From: Bugula neritina
Taxonomy: Eukaryota; Animalia; Bryozoa
Reading direction: 5' to 3'
Length of the DNA: 64,000 bases
Assembly (NCBI GenBank): GCA_964035545.1
Contig: OZ037773.1
Span: 10,011,751-10,075,750 of the forward strand
The notes under the pieces are model-generated. The model saw only the letters and a program-made list of their open reading frames with translations, did no database searches and was not told the DNA's origin. Positions within the stretch are counted from its first letter, which is position 1. Each line of letters starts with the position of its first letter. Shown piece by piece: positions 31,001 through 59,504 of the stretch. The translations under genes were made by a program, and so were the position numbers.

Positions 31001-33109
31001 CTACTTAAGGAAGCACGAGGAGTTGCCTTTCCAGAAAATGAAGAAACCACAACCAGTGGACATGCATAGAGCCTGGCAATGTATCTCAGTATAGGCTGTA
31101 AGAGGGTCAGCAAAGATTAGCATCTCAAGAGCAGCGTCAGCAGCTTTTCCTTTCAGCTGTTGGCCAGTAGAAGAACCATCTGAGTTCTCTGTCAGCTGAA
31201 AAAGTTTAGAGGTTCCTAGAGCTCCTAAAATATATCCATAGATATATTTTCACCTGTAGCTTAATGGCAGGCTACAACATGACAGCCAAACTAGCTTTTT
31301 GATTGATTGACTGAATAAAAAATGCAAAAATATTAAAATTGTGTGGGAATAATTTACCAAATAACAGAGTTTCTCCTGTCATATAGCCAGATGCTGCTAC
31401 AGATGACTTGCTAGTTGTGAATGAGGAATTGAGTTTTTCATCATCAAATATTGAATAAGATTTTGCCATTGGAGTTGCACCTTCACCAGGCAGTGGCAAT
31501 GCTTCAGCGAAACTGCTTGATTGGTTTTTAATTTCGAACGGACTTTCAGTTGAAGCAGTCATCTTTTCACCAAGTTGGACAGATTTCTTTGTGGAAGTGG
31601 CCAAAGGGTGTGTAAGAGATGAAGATGGTTTCGCTGAGTTGGAGCTTGAAACAGGAGGTGTAGAGATAGCTTTAGTCAAACTGGTGGTACTCTCAGATGT
31701 TCTTGTCTTTGCCATCTTGTCAAGAGGCGATGGAGATGTTCCTTCTTCTGGTAACTTTTCAAGAAAAGGTGCAGACGTTGCAAAGGTCCCTATTGTTGAT
31801 GAACTGCTACCAGGTGGTGGGAGTGTTGTTGCCAAAGCAGTCATCTGATTTTCAGACAAAGACAAACCGGTTAATGCTCTACCTACTGTGGTTTTGGAAG
31901 GTGACATTGGTGATTGTAAGATTGTTGAAGCGACGGTGGCGATGGGGCCATTATTCTGATAAGAATATTCTAGATTGCAGACAGCCTCTTTTTTATGAAC
32001 GCATAAGTTCAGGTTCTCATCAAATCTGTGCGAAGGTGGATAGCAGACTCGCTGGATTGCAACACCTTTAGAGCAAGTGTAGTATGACTGGCAAGAGAAT
32101 TCATCTGGGTAATCTCCATCTTGTCTTCCATTGCAGTGAAAGTCAGAGCCATCTACTAACATATTTTTTATTCAATTTATATTCAAAAGGAAATTCATTA
32201 ATGAGCAACATTTACACCTTATACAGTCAATGTTGCTTTAATAAAAATATTATTCTCAAGATAGATTTGATAACCAGACATACATAAGGGATTTTAGCTT
32301 CTATGACTCACCAGTAACTGTTTCCGATAAGACAGGAAGCAAAGTTTGAGGAGTGTCTGGGTACGAGTAGTCGAGAGTACACTTGGCATCTTGCTTGTGA
32401 ACACAAATTAGTTGCTCTTCATCAAATAATCGAGAAGGAGGAAAGCAATCATCATGGGTTGTGATGTCACCATCTCTGCAGGTGTAATATGCAGCACAGG
32501 AGAACTCGTCAGGATAATCTCCATCTGGTCTTCCTGCACAGCTGAATTCTGCAGTGGCTGCAAAATGGTGAGACAACATGGATATTGGTGAGCATGGGTA
32601 AGTCAAACAGCCGGCAATGAGAACTAAGTTTGCATGTTGAGGTGTTATTGTGCATGCATGCATGCATGTTTACCACTTAGAATTACTATAATAATAAAAA
32701 GTATAGTATAAATATTATTTATGTCAGCAGTTATAGTGCTTATTTGATCGAAAGTACTTCAAACAAATTTTACATTAGCAAAAAATAGTAGGTAACTATA
32801 TATCAAATAAATTTCATTACTTAGAATTTAAATCCTCATCTTTTAGAATAAATTTCTCACCATGATAATTTTTTTGCTTTTTGTAAAACATTTATGCAAA
32901 GTAATAAAAGATACCAAAGCATTATTTCTTAAAATTGAGATAAAAACCCATACTAAGAACATAGGATTGTACTAAATGATATTGTCAATTAAATTAGTAA
33001 AATCTTACTTAGCATTTATAATTCAGAAGAATAAGATCTTACCTTTAACTGTAACGGCCAAAGTCATTGACAATGCTACGAAATGTAGTAACATATGCAT
33101 GTTGATCAT
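31001..33109 (-). CDS. Secreted protein: signal peptide, 2 chitin-binding type-2 (peritrophin-A/CBM14) domains, S/T/P mucin stalk, C-terminal PAN/apple-like domain
   Basis: Exons 33109-33043 (MINMHMLLHFVALSMTLAVTVK), about 32558-32311 (CAGRPDGDYPDEFSCAAYYTCRDG..C..LFDEEQLIC...C), about 32152-31358 (CNGRQDGDYPDEFSCQSYYTCSKG..C..FDENLNLC...C plus stalk) and 31224-31001 (..EIHCQALCMSTGCGFFIFWKGNSSCFLK*). All introns phase 1. Confidence 0.85.
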
Positions 33110-35788: not shown

Positions 35789-36574
35789 GATGAGAGTATT
35801 TCTGTATTTACTGAAGATAACCGACTGATATTAAATACAAGTTTCAGAGTTCATTAGAACTTTCTACACATCCTGCTTTGATTGATTTAACATGATTGCT
35901 AGCTATACTTTCAGCTGTCCTGCTTAACTAACATCATTTAAAACACAGGAAGCTGTTAAGTCTTTGATGTGAGAAGTGCATATATAGTTATACTGCTAGA
36001 GAAATGTTCAGGTTTGCAAAGAAGTAAAGTTCAAAGTTTTGTATTGGAAATGGTCAACGGAATTCACATTTTCACACAAACCTCTGTAGCTTTTTTAACA
36101 TTGATTTGCTTTTTGTTTAAAGAACCTAAACATCTAGATAATTTCCATTCAAGCAAAGATACTACATGCTTTTAATTAAACGAAACAGAAAAACATGCGT
36201 GAGCTATGATGCTCGGCAGTTAAGATGGGATGCAAACAGTCATGCCTACAGTAAATTGTAATATGAAAAAGCAATAATCTGCTGTTGGTTAAAAAATGTG
36301 CTGCGTTAAGAAATTGTCAAACTCTTTCTTTGACATTTATAGCATATTATAGAACTGTTGCAAAAATTTTCCCTTCTAGTTTTAATTTGCAATCTGATTC
36401 TTTAGCAAAATTTTAATTATAACTTTTATTTTCAGGAACATAGTATTAGACTAAACATATAGCTGGATTTATTTATTTTTATATTACCTTTTATACAATA
36501 AAATATTCATATTTATAAAATCTATTTGTAAAATATTTGTAAACAAAATAATCAGTTATATTGCCGTAGTTTCT

Positions 36575-37452
36575 CTAATCATCCTTGATGTCAATGTATC
36601 TTCTGTCATCTCCATCATCATCTCTGCACCAACAGAGGTCGTCATCGTCATCACAATCTCCGCTGTCGAATCTGTCATTGTCATCATCGAGGCAGTAGGA
36701 GTTACATCCTCGTGGGTTTCGAGGGCAATAATCATCATCAGCATGAGCAGACAACACCAAACCTAAATAAATAGTTATGGTAGTTGTAAGTGAGAGTAGG
36801 TAATATGATAGTTGCTACAAGTTATAGGTAGTATAGCTGGCAATATACTGCATGATATATGTCCTTTAGACTGTAGTTATGCTAAACTTATAAAAGTATA
36901 TTCATATAGGCACAATCAGCAGGCAGTGCCTATACTGGATAAATAAAATTATGAGTGGAAAATAGCAGTCATAACAGTCAACATGCCCATCACATTGAAT
37001 ACATGATAAAACAACTTTTTTAGAAATATCGCACCTTTGAATTATGCATTTCTTATAGATTTTTAGGTTTACTATCCAAGTTTTCAATTAAGTACAAAAG
37101 TGTAAGTCAAACTTGCAAATTCATAAATGTTTTACATATAACATAACTTATATAAGTCTTACATCATCAGCAGAGTAATATTTGTGACAGAAAAGGATGG
37201 AGTTTAATTTGAAAATATTTTGTTAATTCAGTTTGTATCTACAGTTTATCATGGTAGAAAGGTTTATAGTTTTTCTGACATGCTAGATAAATTGCAGCTT
37301 ATTGCAGCATTTATGTAAAATTTATAATATAACGGCAAATATTTTTCATCCCTTTATGTCAACTGGACTAATATCAAGAAGAAGTAGATAGATTTTTGAA
37401 GCTACTTACACAATAGGACAGCTACAAGCAGAGCAATAATTGATAGCCTCAT
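36575..37452 (-). CDS. Secreted Asp-rich (anionic) CS-alpha/beta defensin-fold peptide
   Basis: Exon 37452-37410 MRLSIIALLVAVLL, phase-1 splice to 36762-36575 CLVLSAHA-DDDYCPRNPRGCNSYCLDDDNDRFDSGDCDDDDDLCWCRDDDGDDRRYIDIKDD*. Cys spacing C-x6-CxxxC-x12-C-x6-CxC with GxC. 5' UTR exon (donor about 37694) and TATA at 37744-37753. Confidence 0.8.
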
Positions 37453-40400
37453 TTTGAATTCTTTGAGTGATTCTTTTGTTTGCTTTCTAACTCTTTGCGT
37501 TCGCCTGAAAGATATATAATAACTGTGCATGGGTGCAAAACACGTTGAGTCTCAAAGGTTGGTAAAACTGTTTAAATAACCTCAAAGTAAAAAATTAGCT
37601 CAAACTACATTAGTGCAGTGTAGAGAGAAATTTTTCTCACGTTTGTGAAAGCTTGCTGACAATAAAAAGTTTGCATACAGATTTACATTCTTACCTTTAG
37701 TCTGTCTGTGTGAAGACTGTTGAAAGTTCTGAGTAAAGCTGGTATTTATATATTAGTAGAAACTTGGGCAGTTGCCAGTTGTGTACAATACAGCCAGTTT
37801 GCCTGTCAGCAAACATGGAGATAAATAACGTCTAGTGCCCACAGACAATAGGATAAAAAATAAGACAATTAATCAAACTTGCTTAACAAAAGCTGTCAAT
37901 TTAATTTGAACTTTTTGCCCATTTAAATTGTCTTACGCATGACATAAAAATAGAGCAGGGTATATAATTTATATGCTATAACTGATTACGTGACTAGTTT
38001 TAACGAAGTTTGCGTATCTATAGCCAGCTTGTATATATATAGGAAAGATTTTTTAAGTTCTTCAGTTTTTTGCATCTGATATATTTTTATCTTGATGCTG
38101 TCTGAAAAACTTTTTAATCAGACATATTTATGTAAGATAAAACAAAAAAAGTTTGAATGCTTATGTATAATTACGTTGCTTCTGATGTGTTATGTAATTA
38201 AAACAGATTCTTATAGGATTAGGCTAGTAGCAAATTGTTAAATATCATTTGATCCATTTCAATATTAAAGAATTCTGGTGAAATGCTACATCAGAGTCAG
38301 TCTTAATATTATTTCCTTAACTGTGCAGAAGTTATTCTAGTAATAGTCTTTTGAAAATTCTACCTGTGAATAAAAATAATATTTTAGCGTTTAGTATTTA
38401 TGCAGTCTTTCAGATTTTATATATAAAAATATCTTTAAATGCTATAGGGTTCCTCTGTGTAAATGTTAATTAAAACAGGTATTTTTATTTCCTTATTGCA
38501 GTGCAAGCTAGCAGACAGTTAAAATTTTTACTGTCAAAATTAGAGTAATTATACAACTGACATCTGACATCGGTTTAAGAAGTGTTTTATAGTTATACAG
38601 CATATATATATACGCTGTATATATATAAATTATAGTCACCAGGGTTGTCTACTTCCTTATTGCTTAAAACAAAAAGAGGATAAAAATAAAACATTACATT
38701 TAAAATTGGCACTTTGATGAGAGAATAAATACAATGTAGCTAAAAGACAGGCCTATAGCCTAAAATGCCACTTGTCTTAATAGTTTATTCCTTAACCGAA
38801 TAGGTTTTTGATGATATTATTTTAAGTATAATTGCAATTTGAAATGCACTGCTTGTATATATAGTAAGAAACTAATAATAATTATTTTAGCAATGAGTTT
38901 ATGAATATATTATTATATCTATTAGAAAAGTAGGTTAATTTATTCATTACAAAACTATTTCTTTAGTTTCTTAACTTCTAAAGGTAGAATCACCCTTTTA
39001 CCATGAAGAAATATAATTTTTATTATAGCAAGGATTATTTTACTTCTTTGATAAAGTTTGAAAACTATTTATAGCTGTACCGTTATTATGTGAGTTAGAA
39101 CAAACTCTCAAATAAGTTGGATGCAAATCTTCTATGAATGCTTAATTTTGATTGAGTTTGCAGCTTTGTCGGCTTCACAAAACACTTGGAAATAGAAACT
39201 GCAGAACTTCTGGCACTAACATTGCAGTTGTTGCTACTTTCTAATCATGGAAGTGGGACGTAAGTTGGCAAATGCATTGTTATTGTTTGTTGTGACGTAA
39301 AAGCTTCTGTGTTCTTACATCATTCTATAATAATTAGAGGCTGCAAATGTCTTTGTTTTACAAAAGTAAAAAACTGCAAATATAAATTATAGTTTGTTTC
39401 CAAGACTTTTCTCATTACATATAATTCCAACAGAGCAATCAACACAGTATAGTGGGGTTATTCATCAATTATTATAAATAAATATTATAAAGCAACACAC
39501 TGTAGACTTCTTCAGAGCCGAATATAAATTGACTAATAAAAAATTATGAAAAAGGCTATAACTAACACAACAATCTAAGTTATTGATTTGTCTATTGATG
39601 GAAACTTATATTTCATAAGTTCCCAAATTTATTGCCTACAGGACATTGTCTGCATGTTTATCACAATATGTAGTTTAATTTTGGCATTAAAAGCAACATA
39701 TCTATAGATTCGTTTATTTAAAATCAAGCAGAATATCAAGTGTCATTTGAGACAACGGCTCAAAGTGAAGATAAAACCAGACAGATTGATGATAGAAGAA
39801 GGCAATAAACTTGCTGCTGTCTTCATAACCTAATTCTTAGCTTTTAGCTGCAGCTTGTATATATGCTTTAATCTAACAGGCTTTTTGTTGTGCAATAAAT
39901 ACAGAATTGTAAGCTCTACAAATTTCCCAGTTAACATAAACATCATCTTTCTAATTATTTTATGCTCTACAACTCTTAACTATGACAGCATTCACCAAAC
40001 TTGATAATTAAATTATTGACTATATATTACTTACTTTCTAATCAGAAAAATAACTGTCTTCTATTGAGTAAGCAACTCTTCATAGTAAAATAAGATGTAA
40101 AAAATGGCCATAAACAGCTTTTTCACACACAAAATTGAAGAAATACTTAGTTGATGGCTTTTATCACTTGTAAAGATGCAAATATTTTAGTATATAGGCT
40201 TCTAACTCAATATGTACGTAATAATACCTAACAACATAAGATTGTGCTGAAATCTTTTAAGAACTGAACTGAACAGGTTTTTAGCTAAATATAGCATGTG
40301 GGCCATGTAGAAAATATAAGAGTGAGAGTTGGGGGTACAGTAAGAGCCCCATAAAACTTCTACCTATGACAAGAGGATTACCAATCATATTGAATGAGGG

Positions 40401-41759: not shown

Positions 41760-42595
41760 ATGAAGTGTTTAGTTGGTGCTTTGATGTTGATATGCTTGCT
41801 TGGTGAGTAATAGTGTTAGCATTATGTTAATATACCATTTGGTCATAAACAGCATTTTATTGTTGCTTTAGTGTAGTTTTAATCATGAAACTTATAGCTG
41901 GTTTAATATTAAGTATATAGTAATAAAATCTCATTTATAAATATTATGTAACAACCACAATGAGCTAGAATTGAGGTACAGCAATAGTATATGTGTGCCA
42001 CTAGCATATTTTTAAATGTCTTGCAGTACTATAACAGCGTCATTTATATATGTGACCCCAATATTAATAACCTGCAAAAGTTTTCTCAGAGTGAATTGTT
42101 AGTACACGGATAGGATTTGTGGCTATGCCATTATGGTTAGGGTGACAGGTAGTCTTACCCTACCTCTGCTACAACATTCTTCTATATCCTGAGGCTATGT
42201 GCCACATTATAAGAGAATACTGTGCATCTATAGCAATCAGTTTGTAAAGTTAGCAGATGTCTTTCACCTGGTAAAGTTACAACAACCCGAACATAATATA
42301 AACTCTGAATGGCTTCATATTTTCAACCATTACTTGTCAATTTGTAGTTATCCTCCAGACAGTGAGGGGAGACAATCGCTGTATTCAAGTTAGTAAGCGT
42401 GTGTGCAAGTACACCTGTAAGTCATATGGCTATGAGAATGGTAAATGTGACTCTGCAGGAGTGTGCTTCTGCACGCAGGGAGACAACAGACGAGCCAAGA
42501 GGTTCGACATGCTGCCTAATGCTGACAGCGTTATAAATGCTGCCCGGAATGGAGTCGGGGCTCTCAGAGATTCCAGCAAAGAAGTTGGTAAATAA
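41760..42595 (+). CDS. Secreted CS-alpha/beta defensin-like precursor with C-terminal propeptide
   Basis: Exon 41760-41802 MKCLVGALMLICLL, phase-1 splice to 42348-42595 VILQTVRG-DNRCIQVSKRVCKYTCKSYGYENGKCDSAGVCFCTQGDN-RRAKR-FDMLPNADSVINAARNGVGALRDSSKEVGK*. TATAAAA at about 40940, UTR exon donor at 40992, AATAAA at 42845. Confidence 0.82.
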
Positions 42596-44509: not shown

Positions 44510-46335
44510 AACTTTTGCAGAGTATAAGAAACTTTATTTAGTAATCAATGTGAAACAGAATTATAACCAATAGTTGTGTAACACCAACAATATTTGATAA
44601 ATACTAGGTAGCTAAAAACAAATTTACTTAAACAGGTCACCAATGCCAAAGAATACAGCAGTGTAGTGAAAATTGCTTCGTGGAAAAGACTGCAGCCGTT
44701 TACAAAATTAATTTGCAACGTTCTACAGCAAAATATTGAATGGGTCGTTGTTTCCAAGAGATATTTCACTCAACATGCAGTGAGTGAATACTTCTGTATC
44801 AGGTCTGTATGTGATCTAGTAGTGTCGGGTTTGGTAACCTCTGGTGGTTTGGTGGTATGGAGCTTGATAACCTTTAGTGGTTTGGTGGTATCTGGTAGTT
44901 TGGTAGTGTGGGGTTTGGTAACCTTTGGTGGTTTGGTGGTATGGAGTTTGGTAACCTTTGGTGGTTTGGTGGTATCTGGTAGTTTGGTAGTGTGGAGTAG
45001 TTTGGTAGTGTGGGGTTTGGTAACCTTTGGTGGTTTGGTGGTATGGAGTTTGGTAACCTTTGGTGGTTTGGTGGTATCTGGTAGTTTGGTAGTGTGGAGT
45101 AGTTTGGTAGTGTGGGGTTTGGTAACCTTTGGTGGTTTGGTGGTATGGAGTTTGGTAACCTTTGGTGGTTTGGTGGTATCTAGTGGTTTGGTGGTATGGA
45201 GTTTGGTAACCTTTGGTGGTTGGGTGGTATGAATTTGTTGCATAGCGATCTAAAACATAAAACAAACTATTATTACTTCAACTTAAATTACTTACTGCAT
45301 GTTATATTTTGGAAAACTTGCTTTACTGATTACTGCTCTATAAAATCTTTCCCTCAATTCAGTAAATTTCTACATTTCTGTTAGATTAAATTACTTTCTC
45401 CCCAAATCTTCTATGCACTTCATAGAATATAAAAACCTACAGAGATGGTAGCAAATGCTAACAAAAACGTTTCTTATATAAATTATCAGAAAATGTTTAT
45501 TCATAACTATGATTAATACATTATAGAAAGAAGCAGCAAGACTTACTATGGGGGCGCTGACGCCTAGAATAAGAGGTTGAGTAACTTCCGTAGCTAACTG
45601 CACCTGTAATATAAAAGTTAGCTTATAGTTTAATGTCTTGTTATGATATGGTACAGTAAATTCAAATATATGTTCACAGAGAGAAATCAACAGCTTGAAA
45701 CTTTTCTTAGACAAACTTAGAGCTTACCGAGAGCCAATACCAGGCCGAGGATCAACAAGATTTTAGAGTCTGTAAAACAATAACATAATATAACATGCAA
45801 GTATAAAATTATTATAATGTGTGGTTCAAAAGTAATTAAAAGTTCAGATGCATGAAAGATATTATAAGAACAACTAGTAGAAAGATGAGCAATTATAACA
45901 ATATAATTTCCATAAAATATACCATGCTCCATATAGTAATGCTTTTTCTTTTTAATCTTATTTCAAGTAACTAAATAATAAGAATATATTAACTGTTATG
46001 GGTGAGAAAAAAATAAAAAATAATATTTTAGGTACTTAAAAAAAGTTTGTTTTAAGCAGCTTAATAAAAAACTATATTTTTAATCAATTATCTGGTCTTG
46101 GTAAAAAATTATTAAAAGTTGTGCTCACCCATGATAGAAGTTTAGTTGTTCACCAGCTACCAGTTGAAGATACTGCAAGCAGAATGAATATTTTAGAAAT
46201 CGACTCTGCTTATATACTCCTGGAGAAGGTTTTAATCACATGAGGCAATAGAAAGAAAGTTCCCCTTGACTCAGGAAAATATTTCACACTTCACTGACAA
46301 TTTATGATTTATCATTAATTTATCCAATTACCAGA
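44510..46335 (-). repeat. Left arm of inverted gene duplication (partner 51775-54020)
   Basis: Promoter, introns, exons and 3' UTR align in reverse complement, e.g. 46128-46200 versus 51885-51956 nearly identical. Confidence 0.9.
44816..46132 (-). CDS. Secreted Tyr/His/Thr/Gln-rich hexapeptide-repeat protein, copy A
   Basis: Exons 46132-46129 (ATG G), about 45769-45728 (DSKILLILGLVLAL), 45603-45547 (GAVSYGSYSTSYSRRQRPH) and 45249-44816 (NRYATNSYHPTTKGYQTPYHQTTRYHQTT...GYQTRHY*). Splice phase selects the YHQTT frame. TATA at about 46210-46216; poly(A) signal at about 44533-44538. Confidence 0.82.
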
Positions 46336-51774: not shown

Positions 51775-54020
51775 TGGTAATTGGATAAATTAATGCTAAA
51801 TCATAAATTGTTAGTCAGCATGAAACAGTTTCGGTTGCCTCATGTGATTATAATCTTCTCCAGGAGTATATAAGCAGAGTTGGTTTCTAAAATATTCATT
51901 CTGCTTGCAGTATCTTCAACTGGTAGCTGGTGAACAACTAAACTTCTATCATGGGTGAGCATAAGTTTTAAATGAATTTTTACAAAGACCAGCTATTTGA
52001 TTAAGCTTTTTTTTACTGCTTAAAAACCTTTTTGCAAGTAATATAATATTATATTCTATTTGTTTTATTTTTGTTACAATCAGTTAATATCAATATTATT
52101 TAGTTATACCCAGGTTAACATATAACTTTAAAAAGATAAAGTATTACTATGGAACATGGTTTATTGTAGGCAAATGATATTGTTATATATAATTATTGCT
52201 CATCCGTTCTAGTTGTTTTTGGTATTCCTTCATGCTTTTTAATTTTTAATTACTTTTAAACTCGACATTATATTAGTTTTTTACTTGTATGTTATATTAT
52301 GTTACTGTTTTACAGACTCCATAGAAGAATTTTATACTTGCATATTATATAATATTATTGTTTTACAGACTCTAAAATCTTGTTGATCCTCGGCCTGGTA
52401 TTGGCTCTCGGTAAGTTCTTAGTTTGTCTAGAAAAAGTTTCAAGCTGTTGATTTCCCTCTGTGAACAGATAATTGAATTTACTGTACCATATTATAACAA
52501 GACATTGAACTATAAGCTAACTTTGGTATTACAGGTGCAGTTAGCTACGGAAGTTACACATCCTCTTATTCTAAGCGTCAGCGCCCCCATAGTAAGTTAT
52601 GCTGCTTCTTTCCATAATGTAATAATCGTAGTTGTGAATACACATTTTCTGATGATATATATAAGAAAAAGTTTTGCTAGTATTCGACTATCACCTCTGC
52701 AGGTTTTTATATATTTTGTGAAGTGCGTAGAAAATTTGGAGAGAAGCTAGTTTAATCTAACAGAAATGTAGTACTTTACCAAATTGAGAGGGAAATTTTA
52801 TAGAGCAGTAATCCGTCAAAATAAGTTCTAGAGAGTAGTATAGAATAAATCATTTATGTTCAAATAAAAATAGTTTGTTTCATGTTTTAGGTCACTACGT
52901 CCCAACTACCAGATACCACCAAACGACTAAAGGCTACCAAACCCCACACTACCAAACCACCCCACACTACCAAACTACCAGATACCACCAAACCACCAAG
53001 GGTTACCAAACCCCATACCACCAAACCACCAAGGGTTACCAAACTACCCCACACTACCAAACCACCCCACACTACCAAACCACCAGATACCACCAAACCA
53101 CCAAGGGTTACCAAACTACCCCATACCACCAAACCACCAAGGGTTACCAAACTACCCCATACCACCAAACCACCAAGGGTTACCAAACTACCCCACACTA
53201 CCAAACCACCAGATACCACCAAACCACCAAGGGTTACCAAACTACCCCATACCACCAAACCACCAAGGGTTACCAAACTACCCCACACTACCAAACCACC
53301 AGATACCACCAAACCACCAAGGGTTACCAAACTACCCCATACCACCAAACCACCAAGGGTTACCAAACTACCCCATACCATCAGACCACCAAGGGTTACC
53401 AAACTACCCCACACTACCAAACCACCAGATACCACCAAACTACCAAGGGTTACCAAACTACCCCATACCACCAAACCACCAAGGGTTACCAAACTACCCC
53501 ATACCACCAAACCACCAAGGGTTACCAAACTACCCCACACTACCAAACCACCAAGGGTTACCAAACTACCCCACACTACCAAACCACCAGATACCACCAA
53601 ACCACCAAAGGTTACCAAACCCCATACCACCAAACAACCAAAGGTTACCAAGCCCCACACTACTAAATCACATACAAATCCAATACATAGTTATTCACTC
53701 CCTTCCTAGTAAACTATCTCTTTGACACAACGACTCATTCAACGTTTTGCTACAAAATCTAGCAATAAGTTTAATGAAAGACAGTATTTCTTGAGCTTTT
53801 AGTTGACAATTGCATGTAGTGCATGTACTTTTATAGACATGAAACTTTTTTCACCAAAATGATGTAGTCTGTGACATTTGTCACATATTTGAATGAAATT
53901 GTGTTCAGTCATGTGTGCAATTTTTTATCAAATATAGTTGATGTTACATATATCTTTGCTTTTATTCTGTTTTTATTTTAATTACTAAATAAAGTTTATA
54001 ATATTCGGTAAAACATTTTA
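51775..54020 (+). repeat. Right arm of inverted gene duplication (partner 44510-46335)
   Basis: Reverse-complement homology to 44510-46335, including intron sequence. Confidence 0.9.
51951..53666 (+). CDS. Secreted Tyr/His/Thr/Gln-rich hexapeptide-repeat protein, copy B
   Basis: Exons 51951-51954 (ATG G), 52369-52410 (DSKILLILGLVLAL), 52535-52591 (GAVSYGSYTSSYSKRQRPH) and 52891-53666 (SHYVPTTRYHQTTKGYQT...GYQAPHY*). TATATAA at about 51867; AATAAA at about 53988. Confidence 0.85.
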
Positions 54021-57140: not shown

Positions 57141-59504
57141 ATGGGTAAGTTTATAGAACAAAATTTCATCAGCATATTCTGCCTTAAATAATTTTAGAGT
57201 TGCATTAAAATTGAATATTTTCCCACATGGCCTGTAAACATACTTTCTCATTATTATTTAGGAGTATCATGTAATTTTCTCAAAAAGTCATTGTGAGTAA
57301 CTTTTTAGCTCACTGACCTTTTTGGTTTACCAGTTATTGCAGTTGCAGCTTAAATATCATTACTGCAGATTCTAAGTTTCTATACATAGTATAATAGCAA
57401 TACTGTTTAATGCAAATTGTAGATAACAAGATGCTGATACTGATTGGCCTTGTGGCTGTTTTCGGTAAGTATAGAAAACATGCTACAACTTCATTTAATA
57501 CATTTATTGTATATATATGTCATATACATAATTGCCAATGCTTTTGATAAAATTGTTTTAAAAGCAGGTATTGAGAGATATAGGTAATAAAAGTGACAGC
57601 ATAAACCCCAAGACACTTTTGAATAAATAAAGCTAATCTTTGTTTTATAGTAAAAATTATTTTTTTTAAAATAGTAAAGTTGATGCATAATAATTGATTT
57701 TTACTAATTTTTTAGTTATTGCATGTATATAGCAATATTTGCATATAATGCATTGGTTTTCTTATTATGTAGTTTTTGCTAGTTTCAATATAAAATCAAC
57801 CCTTCAAACAACAATATATTGTTTAGCCTGTGAAACATTAATTTATATAATAATTGAGACACTTCATATATTGTAATATTTTGTTGTATTGTAAACAGCA
57901 TGCGTCAGTGGATACAGTAGCTATCCCAAACATTCCTACGGTCACCATGGTTACCAACCATCATCTCACAAACCAAACACTTACTGTAAGTTAACAAGGA
58001 ATTAACCGATTATTAAAAATGTTTATTTTTTATTTTTCAATATTATCTAATTTGTTTCATCAGGCTTTTGTCTCTATAATTAATTTATAAATTCTGAGAA
58101 ATTTTTATTGGATATATTATTTTAATACAATTTTGTTTAAGAATTTTTTGTAGCTAACGCAGGTGCTGCAGTACCACAAACCCTAATTTATAATATTTTG
58201 AGTTTTCATGATATTTAAACAAATTTTTCACTGTAGAGTTTATATGATAACACCTAAATATATGCATATATGATAAACAGAGAATTACTTATAGTTAAAA
58301 CATTACCATGGCTAAAGCAAATTAATATATTATATCAATAATCAATATAGCAGTGAGATCTATATATTATAGCAATACGTATAAGTTGAAATTTCCTGAT
58401 GTTTAACCACTTCATCACACTATACCACTGCATACAGTATACAACTGTATATAATGTAGACACAAGGGTTTGGTCACAGTGGGAACAATGGTCGCACTGC
58501 CCTGTTAAATGTGGAGGGGGAGAACAAAGGAGATACAGAATATGCACCACCAAGACTCACTATGGCTACGGTCACTCCAACAACAAAGAGTGTTACGGCC
58601 CTTCCTATGCCAGAAGAAGATGCAACACGAAATGTTGTCCAGGTTTGTGGTTCAGACAACTCCAATATTGTACGAGTCGTAAAATCAGAATGCAACATAC
58701 CAGTGACAATATATTGCATGCAGCAGCATTAATTTATAGGTAGCGATTTGGGTAACATGATTTCAGTGCTTCACTTTTGAGCAGAAACAAAAGATTTTGC
58801 ATGATCAGTTGTTTCATTTTCACTTGAAATTGCATTTGCATTTGTAATACTTGCATGAGGAACTCTACCAGTTACTCTACCAGTTACTCTACCAGTTACT
58901 CTACCAGTTACTCTACCAGTTACTCTACCAATCACTATATAATTATCAAGTGTTCTACTAATTACTGTATTGAGTACTGCATAATCAGTACAACAAAACT
59001 GTTTTGTAGTTGATGGACGCTGGGGTCAATGGACTGGCTGGTCTCAGACTTACAGTGGATCTTACAAACAGACCAGATCCAGATACTGCAACTACCCAGC
59101 ACCTCGCTGCGGAGGCAGAGGTTGCTATGGGGACAGCAAACAAGTTAAAGCTGTTCATCGTAAGTTGCTTCAACTGCAAGGTTTAACAAACATGCAAAGG
59201 CATGTTATTTAAATCATAGTTTTAAAACTGCAAAGCTTTTACAGGATATCATAATAGTTTTATTAGGATATAGTTGTTTAAGGAAGCAAATCTATTGATG
59301 ATTTTTATTGTTGATGTTTTAGTTCCCCACCCTCACTACCAACCTAAAGCACATCACGGACCGTCTCACTACCAACCTAAAGCACACCATGGACCGTCTC
59401 ACTACCAACCCAACATTCACCATGGACCGTCTCACTACCAACCCAACATTCACCATGGAGCGTCTCACTACCAACATAAAACACACCACAAACCAAACTA
59501 CTAG
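57141..59504 (+). CDS. Secreted protein with two thrombospondin type-1 repeats flanked by His/Tyr-rich segments
   Basis: Exons 57141-57144 (ATG G), 57423-57464 (DNKMLILIGLVAVF), 57899-57985 (ACVSGYSSYPKHSYGHHGYQPSSHKPNTY), 58460-58642 (WSQWEQWSHCPVKCGGGEQRRYRIC...CYGPSYARRRCNTKCCP), 59010-59159 (VDGRWGQWTGWSQTYSGSYKQTRSRYCNYPAPRCGGRGCYGDS) and 59323-59504 (HYQPKAHHGPS-type 11-mers x4, KPNY*). TATAAAA at about 57068. Confidence 0.85.
58862..58930. repeat. 12-bp minisatellite (actctaccagtt)
   Basis: Intron between the two TSP1 exons. Confidence 0.9.

Follow-up and report, generated by a model that had tools for sequence, protein, structure and literature searches.

Gene structure and composition of an aspartate-rich peptide

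We examined a 64,000-nucleotide stretch of the genome of the bryozoan Bugula neritina (NCBI GenBank assembly GCA_964035545.1, contig OZ037773.1, positions 10,011,751 to 10,075,750 of the forward strand), hereafter the window, and focused on a minus-strand gene that is predicted to encode a small secreted peptide in which 22 of 54 residues are aspartate. The window lies on a 10.88-Mb contig numbered 9 (C9); the tzBugNeri2.1 genome of this species comprises 216.00 Mb in 320 scaffolds, includes nine pseudomolecules at chromosome scale and is accompanied by a mitochondrial genome of 15.25 kb (PMC11480708). Reconstructed base by base, the segment from 36575 to 37452 is a complete and intact two-exon gene whose coding, splicing and flanking elements are listed in Table 1 along with the other genes of the window. 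Exon 1 opens with an ATG at 37452, is translated as MRLSIIALLVAVLL and ends at a GTAAGT donor; no other exon 5' of exon 2 in this locus resembles a signal-peptide exon. Together, the two exons predict a precursor of 76 residues with a canonical signal peptide that terminates in AHA and is immediately followed by the residues DDDY.

Table 1. Positions of the aspartate-rich gene, its head-to-head paralog and other genes in the window.
Feature	Position	Strand	Remarks
TATA-like box (TATATA)	37510..37520	-	~66 nt 5' of the ATG; consensus match only
Asp-rich gene, exon 1 coding	37410..37452	-	43 nt (ATG + 14 codons + 1 nt); signal-peptide n-/h-regions
Asp-rich gene, intron	36763..37409	-	647 nt, phase 1, GT-AG; acceptor ...tatttatttag, pyrimidine-rich tract + AG
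Asp-rich gene, exon 2 coding	36575..36762	-	signal-peptide end (..CLVLSAHA), mature peptide and TAG stop
Predicted mature peptide	36578..36739	-	54 aa, six Cys
First AATAAA polyadenylation signal	36472..36477	-	98 nt past the stop; consensus match only
Head-to-head paralog	41760..42595	+	exon 1 41760-41802 (43 nt, phase 1); exon 2 42348-42595
CBM14 gene	31275-33100	-	signal-like exon 33038-33100; two CBM14 (peritrophin-A) domains, E 1e-7 and 2e-8
Inverted duplicate gene pair, first copy	44773-45723	-	conserved ~110-aa exon and long repeat exon
Inverted duplicate gene pair, second copy	52415-53706	+	conserved ~110-aa exon and long repeat exon
TSP1 region	57410-59501	+	signal-like exon 57410-57469; TSP1 exon 58390-58740, E 9e-8

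The gene is present once in the assembly (216,009,554 bases in 321 sequences), and contigs assembled from one public DNA run cover the locus in two haplotypes. Among the haplotype indels listed for positions 36560-37452, all fall in the intron and none in an exon. We regard the locus as probably a real, functional gene. The second haplotype of the same run also carries a 147-bp deletion at 38297-38445 and, at 39571-40017, a block with ~38 differences per 447 bp, so heterozygosity in the intergenic DNA is high. The antisense frame of the aspartate-rich exon (36589-36771, plus strand) is likewise open, for 61 codons, and encodes a His/Cys/Arg-rich sequence without a start context or signal peptide; it is a by-product of the GAY runs.

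The mature peptide (~6.4 kDa) contains 22 Asp (41%), no Glu, six Arg, one Lys and six Cys, and has a calculated isoelectric point (pI) of 4.05 and a net charge of -15.3 at pH 7. Its cysteines, at residues 5, 12, 16, 29, 36 and 38, are spaced C-x6-C-x3-C-x12-C-x6-C-x-C and include the CxxxC (CNSYC), GxC (GDC) and CxC (CWC) motifs of the cysteine-stabilized alpha/beta (CS-alpha/beta) peptides. A dibasic RR lies seven residues ahead of the C-terminus. A preliminary description of the window had reported a 54-residue peptide with all six CS-alpha/beta cysteines, 22 Asp, no Glu and seven Arg/Lys; its sequence matches the translation of 36578-36739 exactly, and every one of these counts and motifs held on recomputation. 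When we searched the six-frame translation of the window with a CS-alpha/beta regular expression, we recovered two sites, one in this gene and one in the adjacent gene described below (42380-42472). The same expression found no site across 200 block-shuffled windows, so chance does not account for the cysteine pattern. Nor is the aspartate tract a pure triplet repeat or microsatellite, because the Asp codons interleave 14 GAT with 8 GAC.

Related and neighboring genes

The second of these sites belongs to a plus-strand gene arranged head to head with the aspartate-rich gene, with a start 4.3 kb from its own and a first exon of identical length and phase. The product of the neighbor is predicted to be a weakly cationic CS-alpha/beta-like peptide (core charge about +1.7), beyond which lie an RRAKR furin-type site and an extension of 30 aa at the C-terminus, a precursor organization that resembles those of myticin or mollusc defensins. 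Its Pfam matches are weak (Gamma-thionin, Defensin_2 and Toxin_3), and protein language-model comparison placed it near scorpion toxins, nematode ABF peptides and myticin C. The two peptides can be aligned over their C-terminal halves, where they share a GDxRR motif past the last cysteine, with a pairwise BLASTP E-value of 0.003 and a p-value of ~0.017 (1.7%) against cysteine-fixed shuffles. Comparison of the two genes at the DNA level detected no residual homology. A close match to the neighbor occurs in a Joint Genome Institute (JGI) metagenome (3300003318), on a 1-kb contig that covers intron, exon and 3' flank and is 92% identical in nucleotides and 91% in amino acids. The contig bears the scaffold prefix AY690838, which is also the accession number under which the B. 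neritina mitochondrial genome is filed (PMC2678162). The sequence identity suggests that this contig comes from a sibling lineage of the B. neritina complex.

Strongly cationic members of the family are found farther away on the same chromosome. At 4.43-4.62 Mb of C9 (loci L016-L026), 5.4-5.6 Mb upstream of the aspartate-rich gene, tandem and inverted arrays of six-cysteine peptide genes include at least 13 main-type copies in the 120 kb sampled, with net charges of +5 to +8. In each main-type gene, a phase-1 signal exon of 52 nt precedes a mature part of the form GCPKYPSKCKKYC...CKC...HGK. The array precursors carry no acidic propiece: after the signal peptide comes only the mature peptide, which closes with GK or GR, possibly a signal for amidation. 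More divergent relatives occur within the arrays (L018, L020), on C2 (L004) and at 7.15 Mb of C9 (L006). The “cationic neighbors” of the preliminary description were, therefore, overstated: the core of the adjacent peptide carries only about +1.7, and the genes for the +5 to +8 peptides lie megabases away.

Several comparisons link the aspartate-rich peptide to this family. Its N-loop and helix motif, CPRNPRGCNSYC, fits the family motif CP..P..C...C, which is common to the C9 cationic arrays and the genes on C2 (L004) and at C9:7.15 Mb (L006) and reads CPENPNQC in one member. With cysteines fixed and the other residues shuffled, its similarity to the array peptides has a z-score of 3.9 (p 0.0025), and a family hidden Markov model (HMM) built without it scored 11.7 bits on the peptide, a value reached by 1 of 1000 shuffles. 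A family profile of 11 rows, one of which was the aspartate-rich peptide itself, matched only solved CS-alpha/beta structures (E 2e-4 to 1e-2): a scorpion K+ toxin, drosomycin, sapecin, lucifensin, BmKDfsin3, plant defensins and insect defensin A. Because of these matches, the paralogs can be classed by sequence as CS-alpha/beta peptides. A search of the whole genome with Pfam Defensin_2 returned weak matches only, two of which are family members (L004 and L006).

The aspartate-rich peptide is only 19-34% identical to its paralogs. Kept across this distance are the six cysteines, the GxC glycine, an aromatic residue five positions before the fourth cysteine, the CPxxPxxC N-loop, the splice sites and the signal peptide. 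The preservation of cysteines and gene features at such low identity argues, though as an argument rather than a measurement, for constraint on a folded and secreted product. The alignment also indicates where the negative charge resides. Thirteen of the 22 aspartates occupy insertions or terminal extensions, namely the DDD at the N-terminus, the helix-to-strand loop, the turn of the hairpin and an acidic tail of 16 residues that follows the last cysteine. The other nine fall in aligned columns, four of them at positions where most paralogs are basic. Core net charge is +1.7 to +7.8 in the paralogs versus -15.3 in the aspartate-rich peptide. We conclude that the latter is best read, at the level of sequence, as a lineage-specific, charge-inverted paralog of the B. 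neritina CS-alpha/beta (defensin-like) peptides. Its CS-alpha/beta origin is very probable in view of its cysteine framework, a gene architecture in common with the neighbor and its motif similarity to the cationic families. Of the defensin scaffold proposed in the preliminary description, it is this ancestry that gained support; the fold itself is plausible.

The locus also holds other secreted genes of structural type (Table 1), including the gene with CBM14 chitin-binding domains, the TSP1 region with its His/Tyr-repeat open reading frame, and genes of Tyr/His/Thr repeats. A His/Tyr/Pro-rich repeat (PSHYQPKAHHG-like) at 59274-59501 follows the TSP1 exon, and the signal-like exon, the TSP1 exon and this repeat may form a single secreted gene. 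The repeat exon of the inverted gene pair is open in three frames, one of which encodes Tyr/His/Gln/Thr/Lys-rich 11-mers (YHQTTKGYQTP-like) and another Thr/Lys/Pro-rich, mucin-like repeats; the pair has no Pfam match. Its product is presumably the “Tyr/His protein” that the preliminary description had named as a partner for mixing experiments. Outside the window, we noted a nuclear copy of mitochondrial COX1 at G000:C6:11174072-11175412 (L009), which scores near the mitochondrial contig (C321) and has the same 9 in-frame TGA codons; by its sequence it is a nuclear mitochondrial insertion of recent origin or else was inserted during assembly. Additional COX1 genes, on C17, C214 and C73, indicate cobionts among the unplaced scaffolds. 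A genome search for the R&R cuticle domain returned no match, though its controls were uninformative, and an arthropod host was rejected on that basis.

Comparison with defensins and mineral-associated proteins

The aspartate-rich peptide resembles CS-alpha/beta defensins and toxins such as insect defensin A, sapecin, lucifensin, drosomycin and scorpion alpha-KTx in being a small secreted peptide, encoded by a two-exon gene with a signal peptide, and in having six cysteines with CxxxC, GxC and CxC motifs and a GXC-X6-C gamma-core. It departs from them in its charge of about -15 instead of a positive one, in its 16-residue acidic tail and in matching no Pfam model (Defensin_2, Gamma-thionin or Toxin_3) at threshold. 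Invertebrate defensins are typically net cationic, which a peptide with a net charge of -15.3 and a pI of 4.05 is not. Yet anionic CS-alpha/beta defensins with antibacterial activity have been described, among them Amblyomma hebraeum defensin-2 (pI 4.44), a Bombyx mori defensin-like peptide (pI 4.12) and Spodoptera SpliDef (PMC3234185). The likeness to these arthropod peptides (pI 4.1-4.4) lies in the combination of a CS-alpha/beta-type framework with an acidic pI, and they illustrate that the scaffold tolerates negative charge. However, they are only mildly acidic and retain a recognizable defensin sequence, whereas the B. neritina peptide is 41% Asp and 0% Glu and its similarity to defensins outside the B. 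neritina genome is undetectable.

The composition of the peptide points to another group of proteins. Molluscan Aspein and Asprich and the coral acid-rich proteins are secreted, very high in Asp and low in Glu, and come from calcifying animals. Aspartate-rich matrix proteins are recognized by secretion, an Asp content above 25-30% and low Glu, and the peptide agrees with all three (predicted signal peptide, 41% Asp, no Glu). Composition and calcifying host are thus alike, as would be the proposed binding of Ca2+ or crystal faces through an array of carboxylates (for context, PMC11583211; PMC6637933). Unlike the Asprich/Aspein class, the peptide is a 54-residue module, presumably disulfide-braced, without homology to it and is known from its gene alone. 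The skeleton of B. neritina is 100% calcite with 5.1 wt% MgCO3 (PMC5999294), and a mineral role would be compatible with such a skeleton. Defensin-type peptides also occur in CaCO3 eggshells, as reported for turtle pelovaterin, avian AvBD and ovodefensins (PMC9363672). They provide a precedent for small, three-disulfide, defense-type peptides that reside in a CaCO3 mineral and influence it in vitro. In contrast to the B. neritina peptide, they are vertebrate, cationic, not rich in Asp and of the beta-defensin fold, and their occurrence in the mineral has been demonstrated. The literature we searched contained no paper on a B. neritina defensin, no Asp-rich, defensin-like shell-matrix protein, no bryozoan skeletal proteome and no known bryozoan skeletal matrix protein.

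Several results weigh against reading the gene product as a CS-alpha/beta peptide that acts in the mineral. The classical Asp-rich matrix proteins are larger, disordered and cysteine-poor, and are defined by their presence in the mineral. A search of public sequencing runs identified a single run with the sequence, which is DNA, and no RNA run. The cysteine spacing (6, 3, 12, 6, 1) exceeds the invertebrate defensin consensus C-X5-16-C-X3-C-X9-10-C-X4-7-C-X1-C (PMC3234185) in the loop between the third and fourth cysteines (12 vs 9-10 residues), which places the peptide outside Defensin_2. Pfam gave no Defensin_2 match and only a sub-threshold Gamma-thionin score (12.9 bits vs a cut-off of 25.1). 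A word-based search of 5.8 billion proteins with the exon-2 product yielded no candidate homolog; an exhaustive phmmer search of 1.84 billion representatives produced as its sole match a nidogen-like protein with thyroglobulin type-1 (Tg1) repeats; and all 217 pattern matches in a scan of metagenome contigs failed confirmation. Profile comparison with hhalign assigned a probability of only 48% to the match with the B. neritina family and 68% to one with Tg1 repeats. Furthermore, a PDB search with the aspartate-rich peptide alone found no match, and a feature search of the ESM Atlas no usable one. LDL-receptor class A, TSP type-3 and EF-hand/DxDxDG motifs were also considered as Ca2+-binding candidates and rejected on spacing and the lack of Pfam matches.

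Fold prediction was of low confidence. From the single sequence, AlphaFold2 built a low-confidence model without a helix (predicted local distance difference test, pLDDT, 58.5). Supplied with an 11-sequence paralog alignment, it gave a helix at residues 9-15 (C2xxxC3) and strands at 26-30 (C4), 35-39 (C5xC6) and 45-49, a layout that corresponds, at low confidence (pLDDT 58.9), to CS-alpha/beta. The layout is not independent evidence for the fold, because the helix appears only with the paralog alignment. Foldseek matched the model to nothing in the PDB. The structural check suggested in the preliminary description returned the expected secondary structure only with the paralog alignment, at a pLDDT of 58-59 and with an empty Foldseek search. 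Exhaustive alignment with VIA-align reached Z-scores of at most 2.6; its 18 rows included 7 from the CS-alpha/beta class (plant defensins, drosomycin, an S-locus defensin-like protein and a centipede toxin). We consider the CS-alpha/beta fold plausible on these models.

Candidate roles of the charge-inverted peptide

The explanation that we favor, to which we assign a probability of about 0.35, is that of a charge-inverted CS-alpha/beta paralog with a Ca2+- or calcite-binding role. The surface loops and both termini of the scaffold would have filled with aspartate while the disulfide core was kept. Removal of the signal peptide, and possibly trimming at the C-terminal RR, would release the mature peptide, in which three disulfides could hold at least 20 carboxylates as a compact, protease-resistant array. 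Such an array is expected to be a multivalent binder of hard cations or polycations. Its most likely role would be the binding of Ca2+ or calcite surfaces in the secreted cuticle and skeletal wall, where it could regulate nucleation or growth in the manner of Asp-rich matrix proteins from other calcifiers. We rank this role first since the animal lays down Mg-calcite beneath a chitinous cuticle, and place counter-ion, anionic-defense and decaying-duplicate explanations lower. Taken separately, the Ca2+/mineral role is tentative, and builds on a fold, disulfide pairing, expression and cation binding that we infer.

Alternatively, the peptide could serve the cationic defensin-like peptides of the same animal as an anionic counter-ion or chaperone, co-packaging or neutralizing them or forming coacervates with them, in granules or after release. 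This would be the in-trans equivalent of the anionic propieces that act in cis in other antimicrobial peptide precursors. The at least 13 sampled cationic copies (+5 to +8) do have precursors without an acidic propiece, and electrostatic association of a -15 peptide with +8 peptides of the same scaffold would be expected on physical grounds. Gene numbers and positions argue against such a partnership, which we judge unlikely: one single-copy gene stands against dozens of cationic copies located 5.4-5.6 Mb away, and the core of the peptide next to it carries only +1.7.

A role in host defense or towards symbionts seems improbable to a similar degree. The peptide could be a metal-ion-dependent anionic defensin or a modulator of microbes that does not kill them. 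B. neritina harbors a bacterial symbiont, legume NCR peptides offer an analogy in that they include anionic members, and the gene belongs to an expanded, effector-like family. The antibacterial anionic CS-alpha/beta defensins mentioned above (PMC3234185) lend this idea further weight. Those defensins are, however, only mildly acidic, and a peptide with 41% Asp and a charge of -15 should be repelled by bacterial envelopes.

The gene could also be a defensin-like duplicate that has lost its function or is decaying. With selection relaxed, GAY triplets would have slipped and lengthened the aspartate runs, and the frame would have stayed open because it is short. Consistent with this, the search of sequencing runs found no RNA, protein and metagenome searches found no orthologue, the confidence of the AlphaFold2 model is low, and 13 of the 22 aspartates lie in insertions or tails, where slippage of triplets would place them. 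We nevertheless give decay little credence. The start, signal peptide, splice sites, frame, six cysteines, GxC glycine, aromatic residue, TATA-like box and polyadenylation signal are all intact, despite 19-34% identity to the paralogs and no DNA-level similarity to the neighbor. In addition, the Asp codons mix GAT with GAC, and the haplotype indels listed for the gene are in the intron rather than in an exon.

The least credible alternative, that the peptide is a truncated Tg1-like module whose C-terminal half corresponds to the Tg1 core hairpin (QC....CWCVD..G), is highly unlikely. It stems from the phmmer match (E 2.6e-6) to a nidogen-like protein of 2069 residues that contains 12 Tg1 repeats, in which FDSGDC-x6-CWCRDDDG falls in register with Y..QC-x6-CWCVD..G; a Tg1-repeat HMM scored 14.4 bits on the peptide, which none of 1000 cysteine-fixed shuffles reached. 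Yet the E-value sums 11 near-identical repeats, and a single one contributes ~14 bits, far from significance in that library. Neither Pfam Thyroglobulin_1 (PF00086), at E up to 10, nor any solved Tg1 chain matches. The cysteine that closes the Tg1 domain after CWC and the N-terminal part of the domain are absent, DC and R stand in place of QC and V, and Tg1 domains have no CxxxC. Moreover, the match was chosen post hoc from 1.8e9 proteins, whereas the paralogs had been defined beforehand by position. The likeness is confined to a local motif (aromatic-x4-C-x6-CWC-x-D-x-x-G). Because the cationic paralogs align, weakly, to the same Tg1 register, we attribute it to a generic C...CxC hairpin enriched by Asp matches.

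Returning to the charge-inverted CS-alpha/beta paralog, the peptide is an unusual sequence that appears to take a known scaffold to an extreme, and neither such peptides nor skeletal matrix proteins seem to have been described from bryozoans. That the bryozoan lineage converted a CS-alpha/beta defense scaffold into a disulfide-locked polyaspartate module working in the formation of the calcite wall is, on balance, doubtful. If true, bryozoan biomineralization would gain its first proposed molecular component, and the module would be the first case in which a CS-alpha/beta defensin fold was recruited as a matrix protein that binds mineral. Pairing of the peptide with the cationic peptides would, if it occurs, constitute charge neutralization in trans inside an antimicrobial peptide family. 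Provided that the peptide is made and folded as proposed, one genome would carry versions of the same scaffold with charges from ~+8 to -15 and the disulfide core kept, a range that bears on the evolution of effector families and on peptide engineering. Small, synthesizable and rich in Asp, and drawn from a calcite former whose genome is assembled to chromosome level, the peptide would make the question of bryozoan matrix proteins directly testable.

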